Under the pieces are notes generated by a model, which saw nothing but the letters and a program-made list of their open reading frames with translations, was not told the DNA's origin and made no database searches. A DNA stretch of 64,000 nucleotides, from sequence record OP599913.1. One strand, given 5' to 3'. Positions 2,877 to 53,399 of the stretch are shown here, in pieces. Each line of letters starts with the position of its first letter. Positions within the stretch are counted from its first letter, which is position 1. Both the position numbers and the translations under genes were made by a program.

Positions 2877-2986
2877 AAGGAAATCGATGGATGACGAAGC
2901 ATTTGAAGGAGGTAACATCCTATGCAGTGAGTCTTGTAACTTCTTTTGACTTACTCCCATCGGACCACCTTTAAGAGGATAAAGCA

Positions 2987-3616
2987 ATGGCTTCAAACCT
3001 TCCAATCCAAACGATCTTCCTCGACAAATTCGTCGAGTTCAACAAAGACCGCTACAAAGACGACGCAGAAATGCTCGCCCTCTTTGAGGGTCTGACCCTC
3101 GCGGACATCACGATCTCCGACATCACCGCTGACGGCACCAACCCCGAGCTGCAAAGCGCCACGGTCACCTCTGTGAGCCGCAACTTCAAGGGGGTCGAAC
3201 AGAAATGGCTGCCGGCCAACATCAACACTCCGTTCGCCTTCGTGGTGGTGAACAAAGGTGCTCCTCTGACCGGCGAAGACCAACTGGCCGAGCAGACCAC
3301 CCCGGGTGCCTACGTTTACCTGGTCGGTGAAGGCGAAGAAGCGGTTCAACGCGTGGGCCTGGTGCTGGCTTCCACCACCACCACTGAAACCCAAGCCGCC
3401 GACGCCCTGGCGCTGTTCAAGGCCAACTTCGAATACGTCCTGGACGACGCCGATGTCGATACTGCCACCGCCAAGGTGCTCAAGGTAACCACCAACCCGT
3501 TCACCCGCGGCGAGCTCGTGTACGAAATTGGTAAGGCTCCGATCATCGAGATTCCGGAAACCGACTACGGTCGTCTGGAATTCAAAGAAATCGTTCAACC
3601 CGAACCCCAGCCGTAA
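2987..3616 (+). CDS. putative virion structural protein, paralog of 15304-15897
   Basis: 209 aa, GAGGA RBS, strong high-expression codon bias; N-terminus aligns by eye with 15304..15897. Confidence 0.75.
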   Translation: MASNLPIQTIFLDKFVEFNKDRYKDDAEMLALFEGLTLADITISDITADGTNPELQSATVTSVSRNFKGVEQKWLPANINTPFAFVVVNKGAPLTGEDQLAEQTTPGAYVYLVGEGEEAVQRVGLVLASTTTTETQAADALALFKANFEYVLDDADVDTATAKVLKVTTNPFTRGELVYEIGKAPIIEIPETDYGRLEFKEIVQPEPQP

Positions 3617-10687: not shown

Positions 10688-13600
10688 TTAAGGAACAACA
10701 GCCCCCAACGCACCAATCCATTTGGTTCCATTCCAGGTAAAGACGTAGACCAGTTCAGATCCACTGACGGATGGGGGAGTTCCGTTATGCCACACCAAGG
10801 GTGTTGCATCCTTACCAGCGAAGGTCACAACACCCGCTCCGCCGGTGACATTAACCGTCAGGACCATCCCACGTACCGGGGCTTTAGGTCCATCAGCAAT
10901 CACCATTTGCTTACCCCCCGCCGCGGTGTTATTGATCTGGATGTACTGATCCACCAACGGATTGATTTCCCCACTGGTCGTAAAGACCTTAATCGGCAAA
11001 TCATAGCGGTCAAAGGTGAGATCCAACTCCTTCCATTCAGGAATATCCGTACCGGCACGGAAGACCCGAACGTACTGTTTACCATCCTTGGCTTGGAGGT
11101 CTTCAATACCCTTCGGAAACTCAATAGCTTTCCATTCGGTACCGTCACCTTCTGCATTGACAGCCTGGGCGTAATACGTCCCTGCAACCGCATTCGGTAC
11201 AGGACCAATAGGGAGGGGTACCCAACGGTTACCCAACCGAACAACCCGCCCTTCAGACTCCATGGGGGAATTGACATCACCCGCCACCAAACGCCCCCAC
11301 AGGACCCAACCCCGATCAACGGTCTTGTAGAACACGTTGAAGGTCTCAGAGACAGCCCAGTCACCGACTCGACCACTGAAGGCATCCGAAGGTGCGTCTA
11401 CACCCGGCGGCAACGTAAGCCACCGGCTGCCTTGCTCGCCCTGAATACCGGGTTTCCCTTGAGGTCCGGGAGGACCGTCACCTCCGGTCTTACCGGTTTG
11501 ACCGCGCCATTCACCGGTTTCACGCCAGGCGTTAGTCGACGTACTCCAGATGGCTAGGGTGTTGGACTCCGCCAGGTAATACGCATCCCCCGCAACCCCC
11601 GCAGGAATAGCCGCTTGTAAAGCTGCCAGGTTCGCATAATCCCCTTTAATGGGTACCGCAGGGCCTTCGGGACCTTGTTCACCCCGTTCCCCGTCCTTAC
11701 CCGGTTCACCCCGGAAATCAAACCCAGGACTCCACTCGCCCTCATCATTCACGAAATACGTTAAATGATTCTCCAGAACGAGGATAGCATCACCTTGCTT
11801 ATAATCACCTGCCGCAGGCAGTTCTGCCAAGGTGGGTACTACATCCACCATGTTCAACCCAGCACCGGGAGCGCCATCACTTCCTGGCATGGACACTGGA
11901 CCCACGTTATCCCAACGAGTTCCAGTATTCACCCAGAGGTCTTTATTCAGGTCAACGTAGGCTTTACCTTGAGTTTCCTCGTTAATCGGAGGAGGATCGG
12001 CATCCGCAGGTGTCAGGACTTTAATGATGTCCAAGGACTTGCCATTCAGGCCATCCTTACCGTTCTCACCATCCTTCCCTTTAAAGACACCCAGATTTGC
12101 CCATGCATTCGAAATGAATCCATAGATCGCGTTTTCATCACGAACGGCATAGACCCATTGATCTTCAGGATTCGCAGGAAGGTCCGCTACCGTGTCAACC
12201 ACACCCCGAAGAACAATGTTGGTACCGTCACGACCATGGAGGCTGGTCAGGAACTCCTCTTCACTCCCAGTATTCCCTTTGGAAATCCAGAGTTCATACG
12301 TGGACTGACCATCGATACCGTCTTTCCCTTTAAAGGGACCCAGGTCCAACCAGGTCGAACTCGCTGCACTCCATACGTACAACCGAAGGGTGTCTCGTGT
12401 CACATACCCGTCTTGGTTAGCCGGAGGGTTGGGTAGGCTGTCCAGATCAGCACGGGTCCCTACAGTCCCCAAGACATTCAGGTTCTCACCAGGTTCGCCT
12501 TTCATGGCCGCCCAGTAATCATCTTCCGTCTTACCTTGGTTCTCGGGTTTATTCAACCAGACCTGAACACTGTTCAGACCACCCGGTCCTGCATCACCCT
12601 TTTCCCCTTTAAACCCCCCCAGCTTCCGCCACGCGCTGTTCAGGTAGATGTACAGGGTATTCTCATCCTGAACCGAATAAACATCCTGTTCTACACCGGG
12701 GTTGGGGAGGTCATCTATGGTCGCTACGGTGTCTTTAACGATCAAGTTACGACCGTCAACACCGTTTCTACCATCTTCTCCCTTGAATTGACCCAGAATT
12801 ACCCAGTTATTCTCAATCCACATACGGACCGTATTGTCCGCACGAACCGACCAGGCATCCTGTTCAACCGCGTTACTCGGGAGTTCACTGGCCAGGTCTA
12901 CCGCCCCTTTCACCACGATACTCTTACCGTCGGTACCGTCCTTACCGTCCTTGCCCTTATACTGACCGACATCAACCCAATCCGTACGGTCTGCAATGTA
13001 GATCCACAGGTGGCCCGTATCCAACGTCACCCAGCCATGTTGATCAACCGGGTCTTTAGCATTCAGCGCATTACGGTCAGCCACCGTTCCCTGTACCTGA
13101 AGGTTAGCCCCGCGTTCACCCCGAATGGCTTCCTGCCACTCTGTAATGGTTTTGTTCTCGTTACCGGGAATCTTCTTCCAGGTTTCGAACGCATCATCTC
13201 CCTGAGCACCTTTATCTCCTCGTTGGGAAGCCAGGAATTCCTGAAGGGTCTTTTCTTCATTCCCAGGAATCTCTTTCCACAGCTCGAAGGTACTCTTGCC
13301 GTCAGGACCTCGAATGTTCAAACTTTCCCAGACAAACTCACCCGCTGTTTTACCCGGAACCAGAACATGGATATCATTCCGCCACAGGTAGGCATCTCCG
13401 GGTTTATTCCCTTCAGGCAGTGGGAGATCGAGGTTGTCAGGCCAAACGCCCAACAGGTTAATCCCCCGTTCCCCTTGCAAGGAACCCGAAGACGCCCATT
13501 CGTTACCGTTCCATACCCGTAGGGCAAAGTTAACGAAGTACGCGGTACCGATCGGAAGCTCTTGGGTATCAATAGCTTCCAGTTCAGCTTCCGAATTGAG

Positions 13601-23646: not shown

Positions 23647-24279
23647 TTACGGTACACCTAATCGAGACTCTAGATCCTTAATGTACTCATCCCTGGCCAC
23701 TAAGGCCGCTTCCAGATCCCGGATACGAGACAAATCATTACTGTCATCCGTAATCGTGTTCTTGCGGGTGGTTTCAAACACATCATGCTCATTCTTCGAG
23801 ACATACCCAATGACCGGTACAGTTCCCAAAGTGGATTTCCCTTCCACTCCGAAATGGGCTTTGATGTAGGTATCGAAATGCTGCATCGCCAAGACGAGGT
23901 TATCCTTCATCTCGGGGGGTAATGCACCGCAGTCGGTGACAATACACATGCGTTCGTACGAATACCCATCTACCAACGGGAAACTCTTCAGGTAGGTGGT
24001 CAGTACATAGACCGGAGGGCCACTCCGCGGTATTAACGACACCACCACGGCGTTTTCACTGATCGCCTTTTCCAGTACCGCAGGGTAATCTGCTTCGCTG
24101 AGTCCAATGGGTTTAAAGACCCGCTCGTAGATCTTAATCTTCAATCCCTGCATTTCAGGGATCGTTCGAGTGGCCTCTACGGTGTAGAACGTATTGGGAT
24201 TCACCACGGTTGAGAAGGGTGCGATAGCTTCAAACCGTCCGGCTGCACCAATGGCTGGAATGATGTTTTGCTCAGCCAT
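23647..24279 (-). CDS. putative virion structural protein
   Basis: 210-aa ORF coupled to 24283..25629; position next to the SF2 helicase recalls phiKZ-family virion genes (synteny from memory). Confidence 0.65.
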   Translation of the reverse strand: MAEQNIIPAIGAAGRFEAIAPFSTVVNPNTFYTVEATRTIPEMQGLKIKIYERVFKPIGLSEADYPAVLEKAISENAVVVSLIPRSGPPVYVLTTYLKSFPLVDGYSYERMCIVTDCGALPPEMKDNLVLAMQHFDTYIKAHFGVEGKSTLGTVPVIGYVSKNEHDVFETTRKNTITDDSNDLSRIRDLEAALVARDEYIKDLESRLGVP

Positions 24280-24282
24280 TCA

Positions 24283-25629
24283 TTAATCCTCCTCTACAAT
24301 CCCGTCTTGAATCATTTGCCACCGGGTGAACATCACGTATTTCACTTTACCAATACGCTTGGCCACACAGACCTTATCCAAGCGAGTCAGACGGCTGACC
24401 CCGGGAGGCAGCAAAGAGAACGGCGTAACCACTTCAGCGGCTGCTACCAGGTCCTCCATTCCACGGATAAACGCCATAGTAGCCTCACCCATGGATCCAA
24501 AATCAGGATCCAGGGAGGGGATCAATTGGTACTGGGGAACAATTGAACGAATCTTCTGCATCCCTTGACGGTTGTTCTTTTTAGCTACAAACCCAATCTG
24601 TACCGATTTATACAGCATGGGTAGGGTTTGGAAGGATTTTATGATGAAGTCTTCTGGTATTGTTGGGACCAAGTACCGCTTGGCAATATCGATTTCAGTC
24701 TCACGATCGACAATGGGGGAGAACGAGCTAGCGCCGGTGGTGCGGTCTACAATCCCAATCATGTCGAAACGGGGGATGGCATAGAACTCCAGCGGGTTGA
24801 AGAGATCGGGGATCTTTTCTTCCCAATCTTCACGGGGATACTTCGAATCTTTCAAGATCTCATCTTGAATCTGTTCGTAGAGCTGATCTTCCGCCTCGGT
24901 ACCATTACCCCAGGACAGGATAGACCAGTACCCCATGTTGAACTTGCCGGTGTTAATCAGGTCAAGTATCTGGAATTCTTCGACGTTGCGCTCTGTATAG
25001 GGCCAGCCTGCATTCCGAGTCGCTTCATGTTCACGTTGCGCGATGACCGTCGGGGTTTCCCGTGCGAACCGCTCAGCAATCTGCTGATAGTTCATGGTCA
25101 TCAGGTTGTCCATCTCGTTTAACGGGATGGGGTGGATAATCGTAAACTGAACACGGGGATACTGGATCAGGAAGTACGCGTCAGCCATCCACAAGTAGAA
25201 CGGCTGCTTATCACCACCCACGACATGATAGCCACGAACAAAGCTCGGTAGCCAGATCGTGTTATTGGTGACCATTTCACCAACGTCTTCAATCACAACA
25301 TTGGTGGTGAATTGGGCTTTGAGTAGCGCAAGGGTGTTAGGACGACTGTCAGTGACTTTCCCACTAAGAGCTTGTTCATACAACCAGTTGGACACACCGA
25401 TTTGAGCTTCAGCAATCGCTTGCGGCATAACAATCTCTGTTCCATCGGTTTCGGAATAGAAATTGACCAATACGGTTGCACTGGGAATGTTCGCAGCCAG
25501 GGTAAACTTACCCGGGTCTTTGGCGTAACTGTTGGACTTGTTCGACAGCTCGCCAATAGGGGAGGTTGTGAGTAGACTGTTGTCGTGAAGCTTTGCTATA
25601 CTTGCGAAAGAAAGGAACGTGGTACTCAT
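24283..25629 (-). CDS. putative virion structural protein
   Basis: 448-aa ORF; same synteny argument. Confidence 0.65.
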   Translation of the reverse strand: MSTTFLSFASIAKLHDNSLLTTSPIGELSNKSNSYAKDPGKFTLAANIPSATVLVNFYSETDGTEIVMPQAIAEAQIGVSNWLYEQALSGKVTDSRPNTLALLKAQFTTNVVIEDVGEMVTNNTIWLPSFVRGYHVVGGDKQPFYLWMADAYFLIQYPRVQFTIIHPIPLNEMDNLMTMNYQQIAERFARETPTVIAQREHEATRNAGWPYTERNVEEFQILDLINTGKFNMGYWSILSWGNGTEAEDQLYEQIQDEILKDSKYPREDWEEKIPDLFNPLEFYAIPRFDMIGIVDRTTGASSFSPIVDRETEIDIAKRYLVPTIPEDFIIKSFQTLPMLYKSVQIGFVAKKNNRQGMQKIRSIVPQYQLIPSLDPDFGSMGEATMAFIRGMEDLVAAAEVVTPFSLLPPGVSRLTRLDKVCVAKRIGKVKYVMFTRWQMIQDGIVEED

Positions 25630-45269: not shown

Positions 45270-46712
45270 ATGAAACCGACTAACATTACCCTCTTAGACC
45301 CCCGGACGATTGTTCCGGGTGTCTTTAAACCTATTACGTCTACGGACTCATTTGAAGGGATGACTCAGAACCTCAATGATGATGGTCTCTTCTCCCTTGA
45401 CATCTTCGGTAAACTGGGTAGTAAACAACGTGATAACACGGAAGCGTATATCGACGTTAAACTTCCCATCTTCAATCCCACTTACCTAAAAGCCCTTATA
45501 CAGATCAAAAGTCTGTATCATTCAATTTTGAAAGGGTCGGAATACGCGGTATGGGATCCCGAACTGAAGGATTTCATAAAATCGAACATCCTGGAAGGGG
45601 AAAAGGGTTTCGCCTTCTTCCTGAAACATTTTGATGAAACCGTCTTCTCCCTGACCCCCTCTCATAAACGCAAACAACGGGTGGAACTGGCGAACCAATT
45701 CCGTAAGACAGCGTTAACGGATAAGGTCCTGGTTATCCCCGCTGGTCTCAGGGATATCCAATTCAATCCGGATGGTTCCCACACCGAACCTGAAATCACT
45801 GAATTCTACCGCGCCTTAATGTTCCGGGTGAGGGTGATCCTCGGGAATAAGGAAGATGCCCTGAACCCCCTTTACGATACCGTTCGGTGGGGGGTACAGA
45901 ATGCTTTCTTGGAATTGGATAATTACCTCTTTGGTTTACTCCAAGGGAAAGGGGGTGTTCTCCAGCGTCGTATGTCCACCCGGGGGGTTCACAACAGCAC
46001 CCGGAACGTCATTACCGCCCGTAAAGTCTCCAGGACACGTTTAGACTTCGACGACGGTGTAGGTCCTAACTCTGCGGACATGGGACTCTACCAAGCCCTG
46101 CTGAACTTCCCTTATGTCTGCATCAATGCGTTAACCAACAGCTACCTTTCCAACATCTTCACCCCCAGCTCTCAAACCGCTAAGCTGGTGAATACCAAGA
46201 CCCTGGAATACGAATACGCTGAAGTCTCCCCTGAGGTGGTAGAGAAATGGACCACCGCCACCGGGTTAATGAAACTCTTCAACGGGTTTGCCGATCCCTC
46301 CTTACGGAGTAAACCCATTGTCATTGAGTGGAAATACTTAGCCCTCATTTATGATGATGGGACTGATGTGTGTGTTCTCCATGACATCAACGATCTCCCT
46401 CAAGGGAAAGACCGTAAACGGGTGAAACCTATCACCTACATGGAACTCTTCTACTTGAGTTGCCACAGTGTCATCGAAGAACAGATTACAGGACAAACCC
46501 GGTATCCCATTACGGGGATTGGCTCTATCTTCCCGGCTAAGGTTAACCTACGTACCACCACCAATGCGAGCCAGCGGGTCATTCGTAATCCGATTGATTG
46601 GAGTGTGCGGGAAACCTGTAAACGGTTCCCTAAACGTGAAGCCCACCCCGATTACTTCGATGCCATGTCCGTAGACCCCTCTAGAGAAGCTTTGCTCGAC
46701 AGTGACCATGAT
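45270..46712 (+). CDS. rpoC: virion RNA polymerase beta' (catalytic half), exon 1
   Basis: VIPAGLRDI and GVLQRRMSTRGVHNSTRNVIT align with beta' PPDLRP and [20 protein letters not shown]; ends DSDHD, completed to DHDGD by exon 2. Confidence 0.9.
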
Positions 46713-46742
46713 TAGATAGTGATGCATGATATAAACTCACTA

Positions 46743-46794
46743 TACAACTCCTATTGTATGCGGAAATGTTCGCATTCGACCATAAGGAGTTGTA
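46743..46794 (+). promoter_or_regulatory. RBS-sequestering hairpin of the HNH gene with internal TATG
   Basis: TACAACTCCT (46743-52) is the exact reverse complement of AGGAGTTGTA (46785-94), which holds the SD; TATG at 46757-60. Confidence 0.65.
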
Positions 46795-46797
46795 AAG

Positions 46798-48069
46798 ATG
46801 TTAACGTGTTTTGGAAAGAAATACGTGTTGTCTACAACCAACACGGTTTACAATGTCACCGATAAGACAGATGTTCCAGTCCATCGGATGACAGACGGGA
46901 ATACGTTCTTCATCGCACGGGGCGATGAAAACGAACTGGTTAAGATCAAACTGGGGTTAATGATCCTCCATGGAGAAGGAAAGTTCCATCTTCCTCTCTC
47001 TGAATGGGAACAGGTGAAAGTAGGTTTTCTGGATGACGATACAGGAAACTTTGCAGCGGATAACCTTTACTTGGTCTATCCTGAAGAGGGCATCCCTTAC
47101 CCTGAACTCTCTGGGTACTACTACATCCCCGGGTTTGAACTCAACGCAATCAACCGAGACGGTGTGGTATACCGAACACTTAGAAAGAATCTTTACCCAC
47201 CGTATCTGGGTGGTAACACCGTTCCTAACAGTTTCTACCCCTTTGTTCGACTGGATGTGGTCAGTGGGGATGAACGCAAGTATGTCCACCGGCTACTGGC
47301 GGAGACCTTCGGTAAGCCGCCTAAGGGCTACCCCAAGCTAATGGTCGATCATAATGACGGTAACAAGATGAACTTCAAGCTCTTTAACTTGATTTGGGTT
47401 ACCGCTAAGAACAACACTTTCAAAGCGTACAACAATCAAGAAGCGAGAGCGGACAATAATCCCTTGGAGGTTTTTGACAGGGAATTAGGTCAAGTCTTTA
47501 AGTACGTCAGTCAAAATGAGTTTGCGAGAACCATGGAGGTGGATTCTTGGTGCATTAGTCTGGTACTCAAACGTCCTCGTTCAGTGTACAAGAACAGGTA
47601 CGTTCTTCGTCGGAAGGGAGATACCCGTGACTTCCAAGAGATCTGGGACTATAAACCCCCTGTGGGTAAGAAGATCCTTGCCCGGAATGTCTTCACCGGT
47701 GAAATCACGGTGTATAATTCATTGGCAGAGGCCTCTAGAGCAACACAGGTAGGGACAACAGGCATCCTGACGTCCCTGAGTAACACCAACCCGAGATCCG
47801 CCTTTAAAGACCTTCAATTCAAGCGGGAGTCTGACGAGACCCCTTGGCCTGATTTGAATGAATACGAACTGGAATGCATCCGGCGCAAGATGCACCCTGC
47901 TACAGCTGTGTATGAAATGTTTGATTCGGTAACCCAGGAGACGTCGATTGTGTATGGCGTTGATGCTGTTACCCGAATCACTGGAGCCAATCCCCGTACC
48001 GTTATCGTTTGCGCACGAGAAGGTAAGTTGCTCCATTCCCGTTATCGTTTCAAGAAACTCACACGTTAA
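46798..48069 (+). CDS. intron-encoded HNH homing endonuclease
   Basis: YVHRLLAETF..VDHNDGNKMNFKLFNLIWVT..NN; NUMOD4-like YIPGFELNAINRDG; three C-terminal NUMOD1/IENR1-like repeats. Confidence 0.92.
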   Translation: MLTCFGKKYVLSTTNTVYNVTDKTDVPVHRMTDGNTFFIARGDENELVKIKLGLMILHGEGKFHLPLSEWEQVKVGFLDDDTGNFAADNLYLVYPEEGIPYPELSGYYYIPGFELNAINRDGVVYRTLRKNLYPPYLGGNTVPNSFYPFVRLDVVSGDERKYVHRLLAETFGKPPKGYPKLMVDHNDGNKMNFKLFNLIWVTAKNNTFKAYNNQEARADNNPLEVFDRELGQVFKYVSQNEFARTMEVDSWCISLVLKRPRSVYKNRYVLRRKGDTRDFQEIWDYKPPVGKKILARNVFTGEITVYNSLAEASRATQVGTTGILTSLSNTNPRSAFKDLQFKRESDETPWPDLNEYELECIRRKMHPATAVYEMFDSVTQETSIVYGVDAVTRITGANPRTVIVCAREGKLLHSRYRFKKLTR

Positions 48070-48484
48070 CGCGTTTATATCCATCACTTAGTCCGGCTAG
48101 GCACGAAAGTCCTAGACCGTATTCCTCTGAATTGCTGGGAGTTCACAAAAGTCTGTTGGCTACAACGTAACTGGAAACAGTAAGCGTGAATGCGACCGAA
48201 AGGTAGAAAGAACAACAGACCTGACCTACGCTAACCAATACGGCTAAGGGTCGTAAACAAGGGACAATCAGCCGCTAAGGCGCTACCGGGTGTTAGACCC
48301 CACGCGTAAAGTTCAACGACTAAGGGAGTTATGACCCTGTACACCTACCAAGGAAGGGGGTGGAAGTGGAGGAGACCTAAGGGGGAATAAACCTATTCCC
48401 TACGGTCAAGATATAGTCTGGCCCTGTTTAATAGACAGGCAGGCACCTGAGTGTGCCGGGTCCTAGTATGGACTGACCACCGCG

Positions 48485-48667
48485 GGCGATCAATTGTCGA
48501 GCCATTCTGTTGTAGCGGAAGACAGTAAACAACAGGCCTACGAACTCTTTGGGAAACGGGAGTATTACATCAGTGGTACGGGTCGGTTTTTGTACGATCC
48601 GATCAACGAACCGATTCTCTTTATGTTTAAAGCAGCGACGAGCGGCTTAGAGGATATTGAGGTATGA
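48485..48667 (+). CDS. rpoC: vRNAP beta' exon 2 (60 aa, GDQLSSHSVV...LEDIEV); absent from the ORF track
   Basis: 183-nt open frame right after the terminal G; TGA overlaps the beta ATG (ATGA); spliced product 541 aa. Confidence 0.88.
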   Translation, partial: GDQLSSHSVVAEDSKQQAYELFGKREYYISGTGRFLYDPINEPILFMFKAATSGLEDIEV

Positions 48668-51600
48668 GCAATCCAATTACGTATTCCGAGTTCTTTAAGC
48701 ACTTTGTGCTGCGTAAGAAACAAGACGTTGTAAACCCTAAAGTCCTGGGTATTGGCGAAGTGATCCTTCCTAAGGGGAGTTTACTGCACTTCGTACCGAA
48801 GACGGTTAATGAAAAGGGACCGGGTAGTAGTGAAGCGTTTATCAGTAACTTCCCTAAAGAGGTCTTTATTGAGTTTGTAAGGGACGGGTATAAGCCGGTG
48901 ATGGGGCATGGGCGTACAGTCGCCTATGACTACCCTAAGGCGGTTAAGGCGTACCGGGCGAGTCACTACATGTACAGCTGGGTGCGTGAGATCAGCACGG
49001 TGTACAACAAAGAGAACGTGTTGGTCGTTAAGAACTACGGGATGATTCCCCAGGGGTTCGTTTACCGTCCGAGTATTTTCGTGAATTATGAAAAATACTA
49101 CAACATGATGCACCTGCTCATTGAGAACATCAATGCAGAAGCCGAGAAAGGGGTGCGTCGGCAGTATATGCGGATTGACCTGCCGTTGAACCTACCGTCC
49201 CTGGTTGAGCTTGAGAAAGACTACGGACGGTTTATTGATGGGTTTAATGATGGGCATCCTGTCCTGATGCGCAATATGTTGGAGAGTACGAAGGCTGAGA
49301 ACTGCTACTGGTTATTGGACCTACTGGGGTTCCTGTTCGGCCAGTATTCATTCAGTTTGTTCGGTAAACTCACCGACCAGGCGTATAAGGATTTGCATAT
49401 CCTCTTTACGTCTCAAAGTAAAGTCATTGTAGTACAACTGGGGCTGTTGAAGGGTTGGTTAGATGAGACAAATCCTAAAGACGAGAAAACCTACCCCTCT
49501 GCTCGGAAAGAGTTTGAAAGTCTGAAGACATTGACCCGCCATAATGCGGTTAAACGTTTCTATTTGGCTTTGATGAATCTTTCTCGTGGAGGCGTTCCTG
49601 AGAATGTACTCATTAAAGAGGAAACGAAAAATGTCATCCCAATTGCCGGAGAGAAAGGTACCGTTGACCAAGTGGCTACGGGAACGTCACGAGAAGAAGA
49701 AGAAGAAACATCCAATCTTCCAGAAACCCGAGACCATACTGGCTCGGGCACGGTTCCCCGTGCTGATCGTCCTGCTGGTTCTATCCTTGATGTTTTCAGC
49801 CGAAGTGAAGGACCTGGCGAGGCACATGACGAAGAGCAAGACACAACGGGAGAACGAGGTGCTGATTCAAGTCTTGAAGAGTGGACATCGCCGGTAGATG
49901 ATGAACTGCTGGAGGTGGAGAAAGTCCAAACCGAGATCAATACCAACAAGAATGTGTTTAAGACGCCTGAGAGTGGTGTAAAGCGGGCGTTAGAGGAGCG
50001 GGCTAAGGAAGGTACGCTGACGGTAGCTGAACATGATTTCTTCATGCGTAAAGCGACCCGTTATCAGCACATTGAAATGGAGAACGGTCAAACGTTCGAA
50101 GAGTTCATTCAGATTAAACCCGAAGAGGTTAAAGACCTGGGTGGAGAGATTGAAGGTGAGTTTCTCCCCGTACTGGATGAGAGCATGTTGCGGAGTCGTG
50201 CTAAATCCCTCAAGATCGAGTATCCTCAGAAGTTTTTACACCGGGATATTGGTCGAATGGTGTTGGGTCTTCAGAACGCTGGCTTTGCGATGAACGACTA
50301 CCGGCGTGAGAAGGTCGTCAGCGTAGAAGGCAGTTACGAGGTCCACAGCATTCAGTTGCACGAAGTCAATGGGGATCAGGTAACTGTACATACTCGGCTG
50401 CCTACGGTGCTGAAAGACGGCACCTACGTCATTGATGGTGTTAAGCAACACATGCAACTGCAACGTCGGGAGAAACCTTTCCGGAAGATCAGTCCTCGGG
50501 AAGTGGTGCTGTCGAGCTATTATGACCGTAAGCTCATGGTGAGTCGTAGTCCGAAGATGGTGGATAACCTCTCTACGTTCATGGTGAAGCAAATCTCCCT
50601 CCAGAGTAAACGGAAAGGGTATACGGTCACTAAAGGCAGTACCTGGGATCGTTCCCTTAAAGCCCCCCGGATTTACAGCATTCTGGCTCGTCAGTACAAG
50701 TACATTACTGTCGACGGGTTGGTATTGGACTTCCGGTTGAAGGATCTCCTGGAACTCCACCCTGAGTTCAAAGCCTATACGCGCCCTGATCGGTTCTTGA
50801 TCGGGGTAAAAGACGGATTACCTTTGATCATTGACGATTACGGTAATCTGTACAAAGGGGAAGAGGAACTCGGTACTGTTGAAGACTTGCTCGGTATTGA
50901 TGTTCGTAAAGCGCCTTTGGAACACGTGGTGATTAATATCAGCGGGTATTCGTTCCCGTTGGGGGTGGTCCTGTGCTTCTACTTCGGTATTGATGAACTG
51001 TTGCGGGTGATTAAAGCCACGACGCGTTCGGTACCCGTAGGGACCCGTCCTAAATTGACTGAGGATGAATACGCGATTCAGTTCAATGACGAATACCTGA
51101 TCTTTAACCGTCGGGAGAAGCTCACCACGTTGATCTTCGGTGGAATGCCGAAGTTGAACAACATCAGTAACTTCAGTCGGAGTGATTTGAATAATAACAG
51201 TATCTGGAGTGCGTTAATGGGAGACCCTCGGGTTCGTCCATCTCAGTTCCAGGAAATGAAGAACCTCTTCGATCTCTTTATCGATCCCATTACGAAAGAC
51301 CTCTTGAAAGAGATGAAGCTGTCTGAAGACTTCCATTACTTGCTGATTGATGCAGCTAAGGCATTGGAAACGGATTACAGTCGGCACGAGGTGGAGATTG
51401 AAGAGCAGCGCATTGTAGGGTATGAACGCTTCGCAGGTCATCTCTACACGGAATTTGTAAAGTCCATTCGTCAATACCGGAATAAAGGGAAAGGGCGTAA
51501 ACACAAACTGGACTTTAACCCGGATGCGGTTATTATTGCCATTGGCACTGACCGGTCTACGAACTTGGTGGAAGAAGTGAATCCGGTTCACCAAGTGAAA

Positions 51601-51864
51601 GACCAAGAGGAAGTGACGTTTGGTGGAACAGGTGGTCGTAGTGAAATCACCATGGTCAAACGCGCACGGACTCAGCTGGAGAGTTACAAAGGGGTCATCA
51701 GTGAAGCCAACAAGGACAGTGGTAAAGTGGGGTATGTGACCTACACCACCTCTGATCCGGGTATCGCTGATTTCCGAGGCAATGTTGATCCCAAGAACAA
51801 ACGTACTCCTACCGGTGACGGTTCGGTTACTATGAACCTGATGTACGGTGGAACGCATGACGAT
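48664..51864 (+). CDS. rpoB: virion RNA polymerase beta (N-terminal/main part), exon 1 (phiKZ gp178-like)
   Basis: NPVHQVKDQEEVTFGGTGG aligns with beta NPLSEITHKRRISALGPGG; ends THDD (beta HDD). Confidence 0.9.
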
Positions 51865-52280
51865 TGAGCTGTTGTGAAAACAATAGATCACTCAGTCCAA
51901 CCAGGGAGTAATCCCTTGTTGCCATTACCTTTAATTGCGGGAACCTACTGAGAGCCTTATCTACCAAACCCGAGCAGGAAACCAACGGGCGGCCAACCAT
52001 AACGGGTTGGGGACGGTAACAACGATAAGGATTGGGGAACCCTACGCAGCGAAGCACCTACGTATTGTCGAGAGGACAAGATAGGGTGAACGTTCAACGA
52101 CTACGGATGAAATTTCCGGTAGAGGTGTCAGGATGATACTTCCAAAAGTAAGGTTGCCCTGTATGCTCGAGGTGTGAATAACACTGAGTACAGGGATGAA
52201 ATATAGTCTCGTCATCTAAGGGAAAACCTTAGAGCGTGGTGCTACGCGCACCGGCGGATAGGATATCCGTGAAGATTACG
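51865..52280 (+). mobile_element. ORF-less group I intron (416 nt)
   Basis: P1 ACGAU/GUUGU with U.G at the splice site; P AATTGCGGGAA 51933, Q CCTACGCAGC 52041, R GTTCAACGACTAC 52092, S GAAATATAGTC 52198; terminal G 52280. Confidence 0.92.
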
Positions 52281-53399
52281 GTCAAACGAGCGGTATTCAC
52301 ATCGACTCAGGCCTCTCAAGCAGTGATGGCTAAGAACTACGAGATCGTTACCCTGAGAACGGGTTACGAGAACGTACTGGCTCACCGGACCTCCGATCTT
52401 TACAGCAAAGTAGCTGCTGAAGATGGTAAGGTTACTAAAGTGGAGAACGATCGCTTACTCGTCGAATACAAGGACGGAACAACGGACTCGTATCCCTTAG
52501 GGTTGGTGATTGGGGAAGCCAGTGGGGAATATCATCCCCACAGCCGTACCACAGATCTGAAGGTCGGAGATACCTTCCGTAAGGGAGATGTCATCGGCTG
52601 GGATGAAAACTGGTTCGGTCGAGACCCCTTCTGCCCAGGACAAGTCGGGGTTAAGATGGGTAAAATGTGCCAGATCGTTATGGTGGAAGATCAGGATGTG
52701 TACGAGGACTCTATTGCAATTTCGAAAGAATTGGCGATGGAAGCACGTACCCCCTTTATTAAACCCAGTCGGTTTGCCGAGGACGTGTCAAACAACCTGG
52801 TAATGCGGGTTAAGGTAGGAGATTACGTCGAACAGGACACGATTTTATGTGATATCGAAGAGCCTCACTTGGTGGAGGGCGAGGAGCTTCCTGAGCTCGA
52901 AGCAGACATCAACAAACTCGGTATCAAACAGATCCGTTCGAAGCATCATGGAAAGATCGTACACATCGATGTTCGGTACAACTCTCCCTTAGACAAGATG
53001 TCTGAGTCGTTCCGTTCGTTCATTGTTCAGAAGGATAAGGAAACGAAACGGAAAGGGTTGGTGGAAGGAACCGGTGTCGAGAACAATGCCATTTCCACGA
53101 TGTTCAATCTTAATCGTCCCATGTTAGGTCCAGGTAAGGCGTTCATTACGTTCTACATCGAGTCGTTAGACCCGAGTACCAATGCGGATAAGTATGTCAT
53201 TGGGAACCAGATGAAAGCCACTGTGGGTCGTATCATGGAAAGACCGCTTAAGACTGCCAGTGGGATTGTAATTGATGTGAAGTCGAGCTTTAAAGGGATG
53301 TTTAACCGAATGGTGCTCAGTTTGAGGAACAAACTGGTTGCTAACGAGTATGGTTACCAAATCACTCGCCAAGCCATTAAACTCTACAGAGGTAAATAA
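52281..53399 (+). CDS. rpoB: vRNAP beta exon 2
   Basis: HDD|VKRAVFTSTQASQAV aligns with beta HDDANRALMGANMQRQAV; YEDSIAISK and ADKYVIGNQMK motifs; spliced product 1439 aa. Confidence 0.9.
   Translation, partial: VKRAVFTSTQASQAVMAKNYEIVTLRTGYENVLAHRTSDLYSKVAAEDGKVTKVENDRLLVEYKDGTTDSYPLGLVIGEASGEYHPHSRTTDLKVGDTFRKGDVIGWDENWFGRDPFCPGQVGVKMGKMCQIVMVEDQDVYEDSIAISKELAMEARTPFIKPSRFAEDVSNNLVMRVKVGDYVEQDTILCDIEEPHLVEGEELPELEADINKLGIKQIRSKHHGKIVHIDVRYNSPLDKMSESFRSFIVQKDKETKRKGLVEGTGVENNAISTMFNLNRPMLGPGKAFITFYIESLDPSTNADKYVIGNQMKATVGRIMERPLKTASGIVIDVKSSFKGMFNRMVLSLRNKLVANEYGYQITRQAIKLYRGK

Follow-up and report, generated by a model that had tools for sequence, protein, structure and literature searches.

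An ORF-less group I intron predicted within the virion RNA polymerase beta-like gene of EL-like Pseudomonas jumbo phages

The window analysed here, 64,000 nt of sequence record OP599913.1, belongs to an EL-like Pseudomonas jumbo phage (Elvirus). Across positions 48664-53399, its identity is 100% to Pseudomonas phage IR-QUMS-PaBa1-GHS-2021 and 98.2% to phage EL, of the genus Elvirus. The EL record places two ORFs here, gp186 and gp187, each labelled "RNA polymerase beta subunit," downstream of gp184 (likewise "beta subunit") and gp185 (HNH endonuclease); two CDSs are annotated in all seven intron-bearing EL-like records. According to the ORF list and its translation, a 1067-aa ORF of the window (48664..51867) ends in ...MYGGTHDD followed by TGA, and the frame of a 387-aa ORF (52236..53399) reads VKRAVFTSTQASQAV from 52281, immediately after G52280. 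The spacer between the THDD end and the resumed frame, 51865-52280, is 416 nt long. The original prediction had described this THDD-TGA end and the frame that resumes after a G 416 nt later, both of which are present as stated, and had proposed that an ORF-less group I intron interrupts a single gene. The layout is as follows.

48664..51864, + strand: exon 1 of the gene for the virion RNA polymerase N-terminal beta-like subunit (aa 1-1067; EL gp186)
51865..52280, + strand: predicted ORF-less group I intron (416 nt); GXNNE2/GXNNA8 and the X4/X5 contigs lack exactly these bases
52236..52280, + strand: artefactual head of the "387-aa ORF," consisting of intron sequence (P9.1, P9.2 and tail)
52281..53399, + strand: exon 2 (aa 1068-1439 and stop; the conserved portion of EL gp187)

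The "first" intron of the window, in the region 45270-48667, belongs to the neighboring gene and not to the 1439-aa gene. There, PHROG 2986 is matched at positions 5-486 by gp184 (45270-46712) and at 490-538 by a 57-aa ORF (48494-48664). The sequence between the two holds an HNH gene (46798-48069), whose protein is 29% identical to PhiPA3 gp210 (E 7e-12), and a group I core (48075-48438; Rfam 45.5 bits). At least the last 500 nt of this neighboring-intron region are retained in GXNNE2.

The spacer at 51865-52280 is present in seven of nine EL-like GenBank records and missing from two, vB_PaeM_GXNNE2 and GXNNA8. These two are 98.2% identical to the query, which they match in two pieces with 91% coverage. 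In GXNNE2 the region is a single 1439-aa CDS (XRX14893.1), whose first 1067 aa have the same extent as exon 1. Its alignment runs from ...ACG CAT GAC GAT directly into GTG AAG CGA GCA (THDD|VKRA), with precisely 51865-52280 missing, and no alternative placement of the gap recreates the intron-less sequence. Natural intron-less alleles thus fix the intron limits at 51865 and 52280. Presence or absence at one site among close relatives is a hallmark of mobile group I introns, and the seven intron-bearing phages, independently isolated, are evidently viable.

Four public sequencing runs (X1, X4, X5, and X9, from 21 candidate runs) were also examined. X1 and X9 contain the intron. The X4/X5 contigs join 51864 straight to exon 2, with zero coverage across the 416 nt. 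The depth over the neighboring HNH intron is flat, the reads carry Nextera adapters and exon 2 opens with a third allele (GTA AAG); X4/X5 therefore most likely represent DNA of a further intron-less strain, and we set aside their junction contigs as candidates for spliced RNA. Near the junction, 52283 and 52286 are the sole positions that split intron-bearing from intron-less alleles, and both changes are synonymous: exon 2 starts with GTC AAA in all intron-bearing alleles, with GTG AAG in GXNNE2 and with GTA AAG in X4/X5. These differences could mark a tract of co-conversion, meet some requirement of splicing or alter the target site of an endonuclease. One Pseudomonas phage, MIZ-Pa99 (PV472050), has many single-T deletions within the intron and an aberrant intron 5′ end, and is filed under Straboviridae despite being an EL-like phage. 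These oddities are probably sequencing and annotation errors; since the single-T deletions resemble sequencing errors, we discarded the variation in this record as evidence on P1.

Removal of the 416 nt restores a frame that is conserved and uninterrupted in the intron-less alleles, in the family profile and in Thermus beta. The joined product gives a full-length colinear match to the phiKZ gp178 / PHROG 3148 family profile ("RNA polymerase beta subunit," length 1424), with exon 1 covering positions 2-1050 and exon 2 positions 1052-1423. Aligned with Thermus beta residues 540-695, the intron-less protein shows no gap across the junction, where ...GGTHDD-VKRAVFTSTQASQAV falls on Thermus LEHDD-ANRALMGSNMQTQAV; the corresponding conserved beta motif in E. 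coli is HDDANRALMGANMQRQAV. The colinearity with phiKZ gp178 that the original prediction expected is found at the level of the family profile, alongside the gap-free Thermus alignment. A tblastn search with 241 aa around the junction located the gene in 297 phage records, and it is uninterrupted there in most of the best matches listed. Pfam returned no domain above its cut-off for either exon product, the one sub-threshold match being Biotin_lipoyl in exon 2 (16.2 bits, below the 22.1 required; E 0.0097); it was unusable for colinearity for this reason, and PHROGs served instead.

The gene encodes the N-terminal beta-like subunit of the virion RNA polymerase, a homolog of phiKZ gp178 and 201phi2-1 gp273/274. 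The PhiPA3 and 201phi2-1 records themselves name EL gp186 and gp187 as phiKZ gp178 homologs, and presence in the virion is known for 201phi2-1 gp273/274 (GenBank note; PMC2919709). [quoted passage not shown] Beta thus remains split at another, genuine gene boundary, so that the earlier description of "one 1439-aa beta subunit" is right about the length and the single gene and overstated as to the subunit, of which this is only the N-terminal beta-like part. The predicted tryptic peptide spanning the junction of the spliced product is TPTGDGSVTMNLMYGGTHDDVK.

Within its limits the 416-nt stretch contains the P, Q, R, and S elements, P3-P8 and the P3/P7 pseudoknot topology of a group I core. The four elements, which had been claimed from inspection of the letters, could all be located. 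The following elements all lie on the + strand.

51862..51897, +: P1 stem-loop (MFE and centroid folds)
51898..51921, +: P2 hairpin with a GUAA loop (folding)
51927-31, +: 5′ strand of P3, within the domain 51927..52049 (Rfam alignment, folding)
51933-51941, +: element P (J3/4 and 5′ strand of P4), AAUUGCGGG
51944-52037, +: P5 with a three-way P5a/b/c-like extension (Rfam alignment, folding)
52040-52049, +: element Q (3′ strand of P4), CCCUACGCAG
52049..52093, +: P6 / P6a hairpin, in a GCGAAGC...GAACGU frame that is the same in related introns
52092..52234, +: catalytic half (MFE of the stretch alone, covariance model R1)
52092-52103, +: element R, GUUCAACGACUA
52099-52103 and 52204-08, +: 5′ and 3′ strands of P7
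52104-18 and 52122-42, +: P7.1 and P7.2
52150-54, +: 3′ strand of P3
52157-95, +: P8
52198-52208, +: element S, GAAAUAUAGUC
52215-33, +: P9
52238-52 and 52255-69, +: P9.1 and P9.2, within 52238..52280
3′ tail, +: UGAAGAUUACG, within 52238..52280, with G52280 as its final base

In a search of 1.2 kb, the Rfam model RF00028 gave a full-length match at 51830-52234 with 39.8 bits (E 2.2e-8). This score lies under the curated gathering threshold of 50 bits, so a search of the whole window at that threshold returned no match. The shortfall comes from P2, P5, P7.1/7.2, and P8, all of which hold large insertions; in other phages, homologous introns score 51.9-87.4 bits. The P3-P5 domain is 67-75% identical to that of introns in Bacillus phage AgentSmith and in PhiPA3 gene 065 (Rfam 82 and 79 bits).

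The 416-nt stretch folds better than 100 of 100 shuffles (z = -3.64), and when 52092-52234 is folded alone, P7 encloses P7.1, P7.2, and P8, with P9 coming after it. From this shorter segment we built a covariance model (R1), which found eight related phage introns. In the resulting alignment of nine introns, which was fitted to the model and so somewhat favors the structure, 92.7% of cells are paired compared to 66.5% in shuffles and both sides change in 31 of 40 pairs; the observed values were reached by none of 500 shuffles, slid registers came nowhere near them, and P7 is invariant. P3 covaries by inspection (ACCUU/AAGGU here, CUCCUU/GGGGAG in 201phi2-1, GUCAUC/GGUGAC in PhiPA3 gene 065, and AACCCU/AGGGUU in PS1). 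Among the EL-like copies the intron has diverged by only ~1%, compared to ~2.5% in the flanking exons, where nearly all changes occupy third codon positions. The intron SNPs fall in loops or keep pairing, as at 52168, where a C-G pair of P8 becomes U.G; at 51917, a C.U mismatch in P2 of the window is a C-G pair in HHBS8_1.

Judged from its sequence, 51865-52280 is a group I intron of subgroup-IA type, P7.1/P7.2 being a subgroup-IA trait. The phage T4 td, nrdB, and sunY introns belong to subgroup IA2, self-splice, either carry or lack an ORF, and sit in conserved motifs of essential enzymes; they, too, have P7.1/P7.2 between P7 and P3′. They differ from the EL-type intron in their host genes, and the likeness is drawn from topology. 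No internal ORF longer than 75 aa occurs inside 51865-52280 and none of those present has a Pfam match, which bears out the earlier description of the intron as ORF-less. It thus lacks a homing endonuclease of its own, the ribozyme helices filling the 416 nt.

The 5′ exon ends in a U that would pair with a G in P1 (U51864 with G51895 or G51871), and the last intron base is G52280. In the MFE and centroid folds, the 5′ strand GAU|UGAG (51862-51868) pairs with a guide CUCA-G-UC (51891-51897), leaving the U51864.G51895 wobble at the cut and closing a hairpin in L1 (51869-51886, GAAA loop). A different P1, ACGAU (51860-64) with GUUGU (51871-75), had been described as clean. That complementarity exists and has its attractions: it offers five exon base pairs, compared to only 3 bp for the favored P1, a U.G at the cut, and a small loop of the kind that characterizes the phage T4 td intron. 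GUUGU, however, is sequestered in the stem of the stable L1 hairpin in the MFE and centroid folds alike, and it has no counterpart in the introns of 201phi2-1, PhiPA3 or FishSpeaker; it also lies in the loop region that holds the endonuclease gene in PhiPA3. What is conserved instead is the guide ...CA-GUC-C... directly 5′ of P2, found in 201phi2-1 and PhiPA3 (AUACA-GUC-CCA), and GUC likewise lies just 5′ of P2 in FishSpeaker. The guide also covaries with the first intron bases (UGAG/CUCA here, UGUGU/AUACA in 201phi2-1, UGU/ACA in PhiPA3), with a compensatory change at intron position +3 (A-U in EL, U-A in 201phi2-1/PhiPA3). The ACGAU/GUUGU pairing is thus probably a mis-assigned P1, the folds and covariation favoring the stronger pairing with the G51895 guide, and we consider it unlikely to be the functional helix. 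The splice junction position is the same under either P1. A search by eye for a P10 that would join the guide region to GUCAAA, the first bases of exon 2, gave no convincing pairing.

As the original prediction held, the start at 52236 is an artefact. In phage EL, a 1-nt deletion at 52276 brings a stop into the 52236 frame, 7 codons upstream of exon 2, and the GTG start at 52236 is not conserved. A Shine-Dalgarno-like motif (AAGGA/GAGG, as before neighboring genes) is absent before both GTG 52236 and ATG 52326, and a start at the latter would remove the conserved VKRAVFTSTQASQAV of the beta motif. The annotators of EL, HHBS8_1, and MIZ-Pa99 chose other starts, which differ among the records.

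Introns occupy the same boundary in orthologous genes of other jumbo phages. In 201phi2-1, gp273/274 is annotated as a joined CDS with the note [quoted passage not shown]. Its intron is 336 nt long, ORF-less and inserted at HDD|MKRIGF, with an RF00028 score of 87.4 bits, and its splicing is supported by published data: a single SDS-PAGE band (PMC2919709) and two spliced nanopore reads in a 2024 paper (PMC11512511). It and the EL-type intron are homologous ribozymes that sit in orthologous genes at the identical point, after the second Asp of HDD; both are without an ORF, and they share ...AUAGAU.AC.AGUCC... as the guide region ahead of P2, together with the 3′ tail and elements R and S. It differs in length (336 vs 416 nt) and in having neither the P5 nor the P8 extension, which explains the difference between 87 and 40 bits. 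The PhiPA3 intron (gp211/gp209, NDD|MKRVGF, 67.8 bits) lies in this gene too, at the identical insertion point DD|xKR, and its core is homologous and its 3′ tail UGAAGAU..CG shared, but it is 1352 nt long and carries a 330-aa endonuclease gene in the P1 loop, which the EL-type intron lacks. For that intron-carried HNH protein, gp210, nicking of alleles that lack the intron and interference with phiKZ have been shown (Birkholz et al. 2024, PMC11620839). All three introns have in common the tail UGAAGAU..CG, which the PhiPA3 and 201phi2-1 introns of this site keep as UGAA(G/U)AUNNCG, as well as P9, the guide/P2 region and elements R and S.

In PhiPA3, whose intron spans 23669-25020 (- strand) of the extracted locus, the P1 guide and P2 overlap the end of the gp210 coding sequence (...YKDLIDTVPL...). 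These nucleotides, ACAAAGAUUUAAUAGAUACAGUCCCACUAG, are still found in the 201phi2-1 intron, which has no ORF (12582-12917, - strand, of the extracted locus), and in more diverged form in the EL-type; they look like a remnant of a lost endonuclease gene. Shewanella phage FishSpeaker has a 341-nt ORF-less intron exactly at the EL site (KDD|PKRTSF; 1825-2165 of the extracted locus) in a gene annotated as two "RNA polymerase beta subunit" CDSs; this intron falls short of E 0.001 in Rfam and scores 29.5 bits with model R1. The EL-type copy is best regarded as a member, without an endonuclease, of the 201phi2-1/PhiPA3 mobile-intron lineage, an already known one whose target is the HDD|xKR codons in the virion RNA polymerase gene of jumbo phages. 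With same-boundary introns in PhiPA3 and in 201phi2-1, where it has been annotated since 2008, the EL-type intron is not new in kind.

From the exact boundaries, the colinear exons, the covarying group I core, and the presence/absence polymorphism observed here, we infer that the EL-type RNA splices, and self-splices. The gene would be transcribed as a single pre-mRNA in which the intron would fold into its P3-P9 core. P1 would offer the U51864.G51895 wobble pair, an external guanosine would attack after U51864, and the freed exon 1 would in turn attack after the terminal G52280. This would join ...ACG CAU GAC GAU to GUC AAA CGA..., and the resulting protein, 1439 aa long, would run through the conserved beta motif as ...GGTHDD-VKRAVF.... 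We regard it as very likely that 51865-52280 is an ORF-less subgroup-IA group I intron that is spliced out of the gene for the virion RNA polymerase N-terminal beta-like subunit.

Current GenBank and RefSeq annotation implies a different arrangement, a natural split in which gp186 (1067 aa) and gp187 are separately translated and then assemble, the 416 nt being an inert spacer or a dead intron relic. All seven intron-bearing records carry two CDSs, the 2010 paper allowed a split for EL (PMC2919709), and jumbo-phage RNA polymerase subunits are split elsewhere (PMC7598289). The break, however, cuts an invariant beta motif midway and coincides exactly with the boundary of an insertion that is missing from intron-less strains. 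The second piece has neither a conserved start nor a ribosome-binding site, and its GTG 52236 frame is broken in EL, while the supposed spacer is a conserved, covarying ribozyme core that has diverged less (~1%) than the exons (~2.5%). A natural split is most improbable in the face of these observations. Another possibility is that the intron is removed but self-splices inefficiently, either relying on a phage or host protein cofactor or serving to time virion polymerase production. Many group I introns need protein helpers in vivo, the exon-guide pairing is short (3 bp) with no P10, and the large peripheral insertions lower the Rfam score. Against this, nothing in the sequence points to a cofactor need, no part of the core is lacking, and close relatives exceed the Rfam cut-off by a wide margin; we judge such a dependence quite improbable. 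Splicing of one gene remains the preferred reading. The 1439-aa CDS of the intron-less alleles, the PHROG 3148 colinearity, the gap-free alignment to bacterial beta across the junction, and the covarying core agree with the proposal that the two "separate" genes are one, and support the view that EL gp186/gp187-type "split" genes together make up a single gene, which an ORF-less group I intron interrupts and whose joined product has 1439 aa.

Phage EL, which is the RefSeq type genome of Elvirus, and six relatives would have their gene models corrected accordingly. With gp186 and gp187 as one gene, the virion RNA polymerase would have one subunit fewer than annotated, and a point left open in 2010 (PMC2919709) would be settled. 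The same misannotation affects FishSpeaker, PS1, PS2, CF8, phiKp_32, and VB_ZK_P1. A literature search, which extended to papers other than the 2005 EL genome and 2008 201phi2-1 reports, returned none describing the EL gp186/gp187 intron. Since related phages have known introns at the same spot, the result is mainly an annotation correction, and the mechanism is not new. The intron-less and intron-bearing EL-like phages, 98% identical, form a natural pair for asking about intron cost or benefit, including protection from intron-endonuclease interference of the PhiPA3-vs-phiKZ type.

A second insertion point lies 10 nt downstream in the same gene, where the Aeromonas phages PS1, PS2, and CF8 carry ORF-less introns and the Klebsiella/Raoultella phages phiKp_32 and VB_ZK_P1 carry introns with a 350-aa ORF. 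These resemble the EL-type intron in having a homologous core, 75-87% identical over P6 and R, and in being the best R1 matches; they differ in being inserted after DDxKR+U, not after DD. Their splice sites were inferred from the U...G rule and intron-less relatives, which read DDPKRALF (Miami) and DDTKRSLF (AhC3_1) at this site. The PS1 and CF8 introns span 1835-2225 and 1329-1731 of the extracted loci, and the pieces of the interrupted genes are annotated as separate hypothetical proteins.

A tentative and rather unlikely reading is that the endonuclease-free intron acts as a shield: by occupying the site nicked by gp210-type endonucleases of co-infecting Pseudomonas jumbo phages, it might confer immunity on EL-like phages. 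Such conflicts would then maintain the coexistence of alleles with and without the intron, along with the synonymous differences at +3 and +6 of exon 2; more broadly, the DD-xKR codons would form a hot spot that related introns have entered at two points, 10 nt apart, in no fewer than eight phage lineages.

Related ribozymes also occur beyond these insertion points. In Bacillus phage AgentSmith, a 1414-aa gene (1-1673 region of the extracted locus) named "putative HNH endonuclease" matches the beta-like subunit, and an intron at 2949-3278 of the extracted locus (81.8 bits), between AGENTSMITH_112 and 113, is 75% identical to the EL P3-P5 domain. Gene 065 of PhiPA3, which belongs to the non-virion RNA polymerase and is the homolog of phiKZ gp71, contains an intron at 2949-3242 of the extracted locus (79.2 bits). 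Its P4-P5 extension is common with the EL-type intron (67-70% identity), and related ribozymes are thus found in both jumbo-phage polymerase gene sets.
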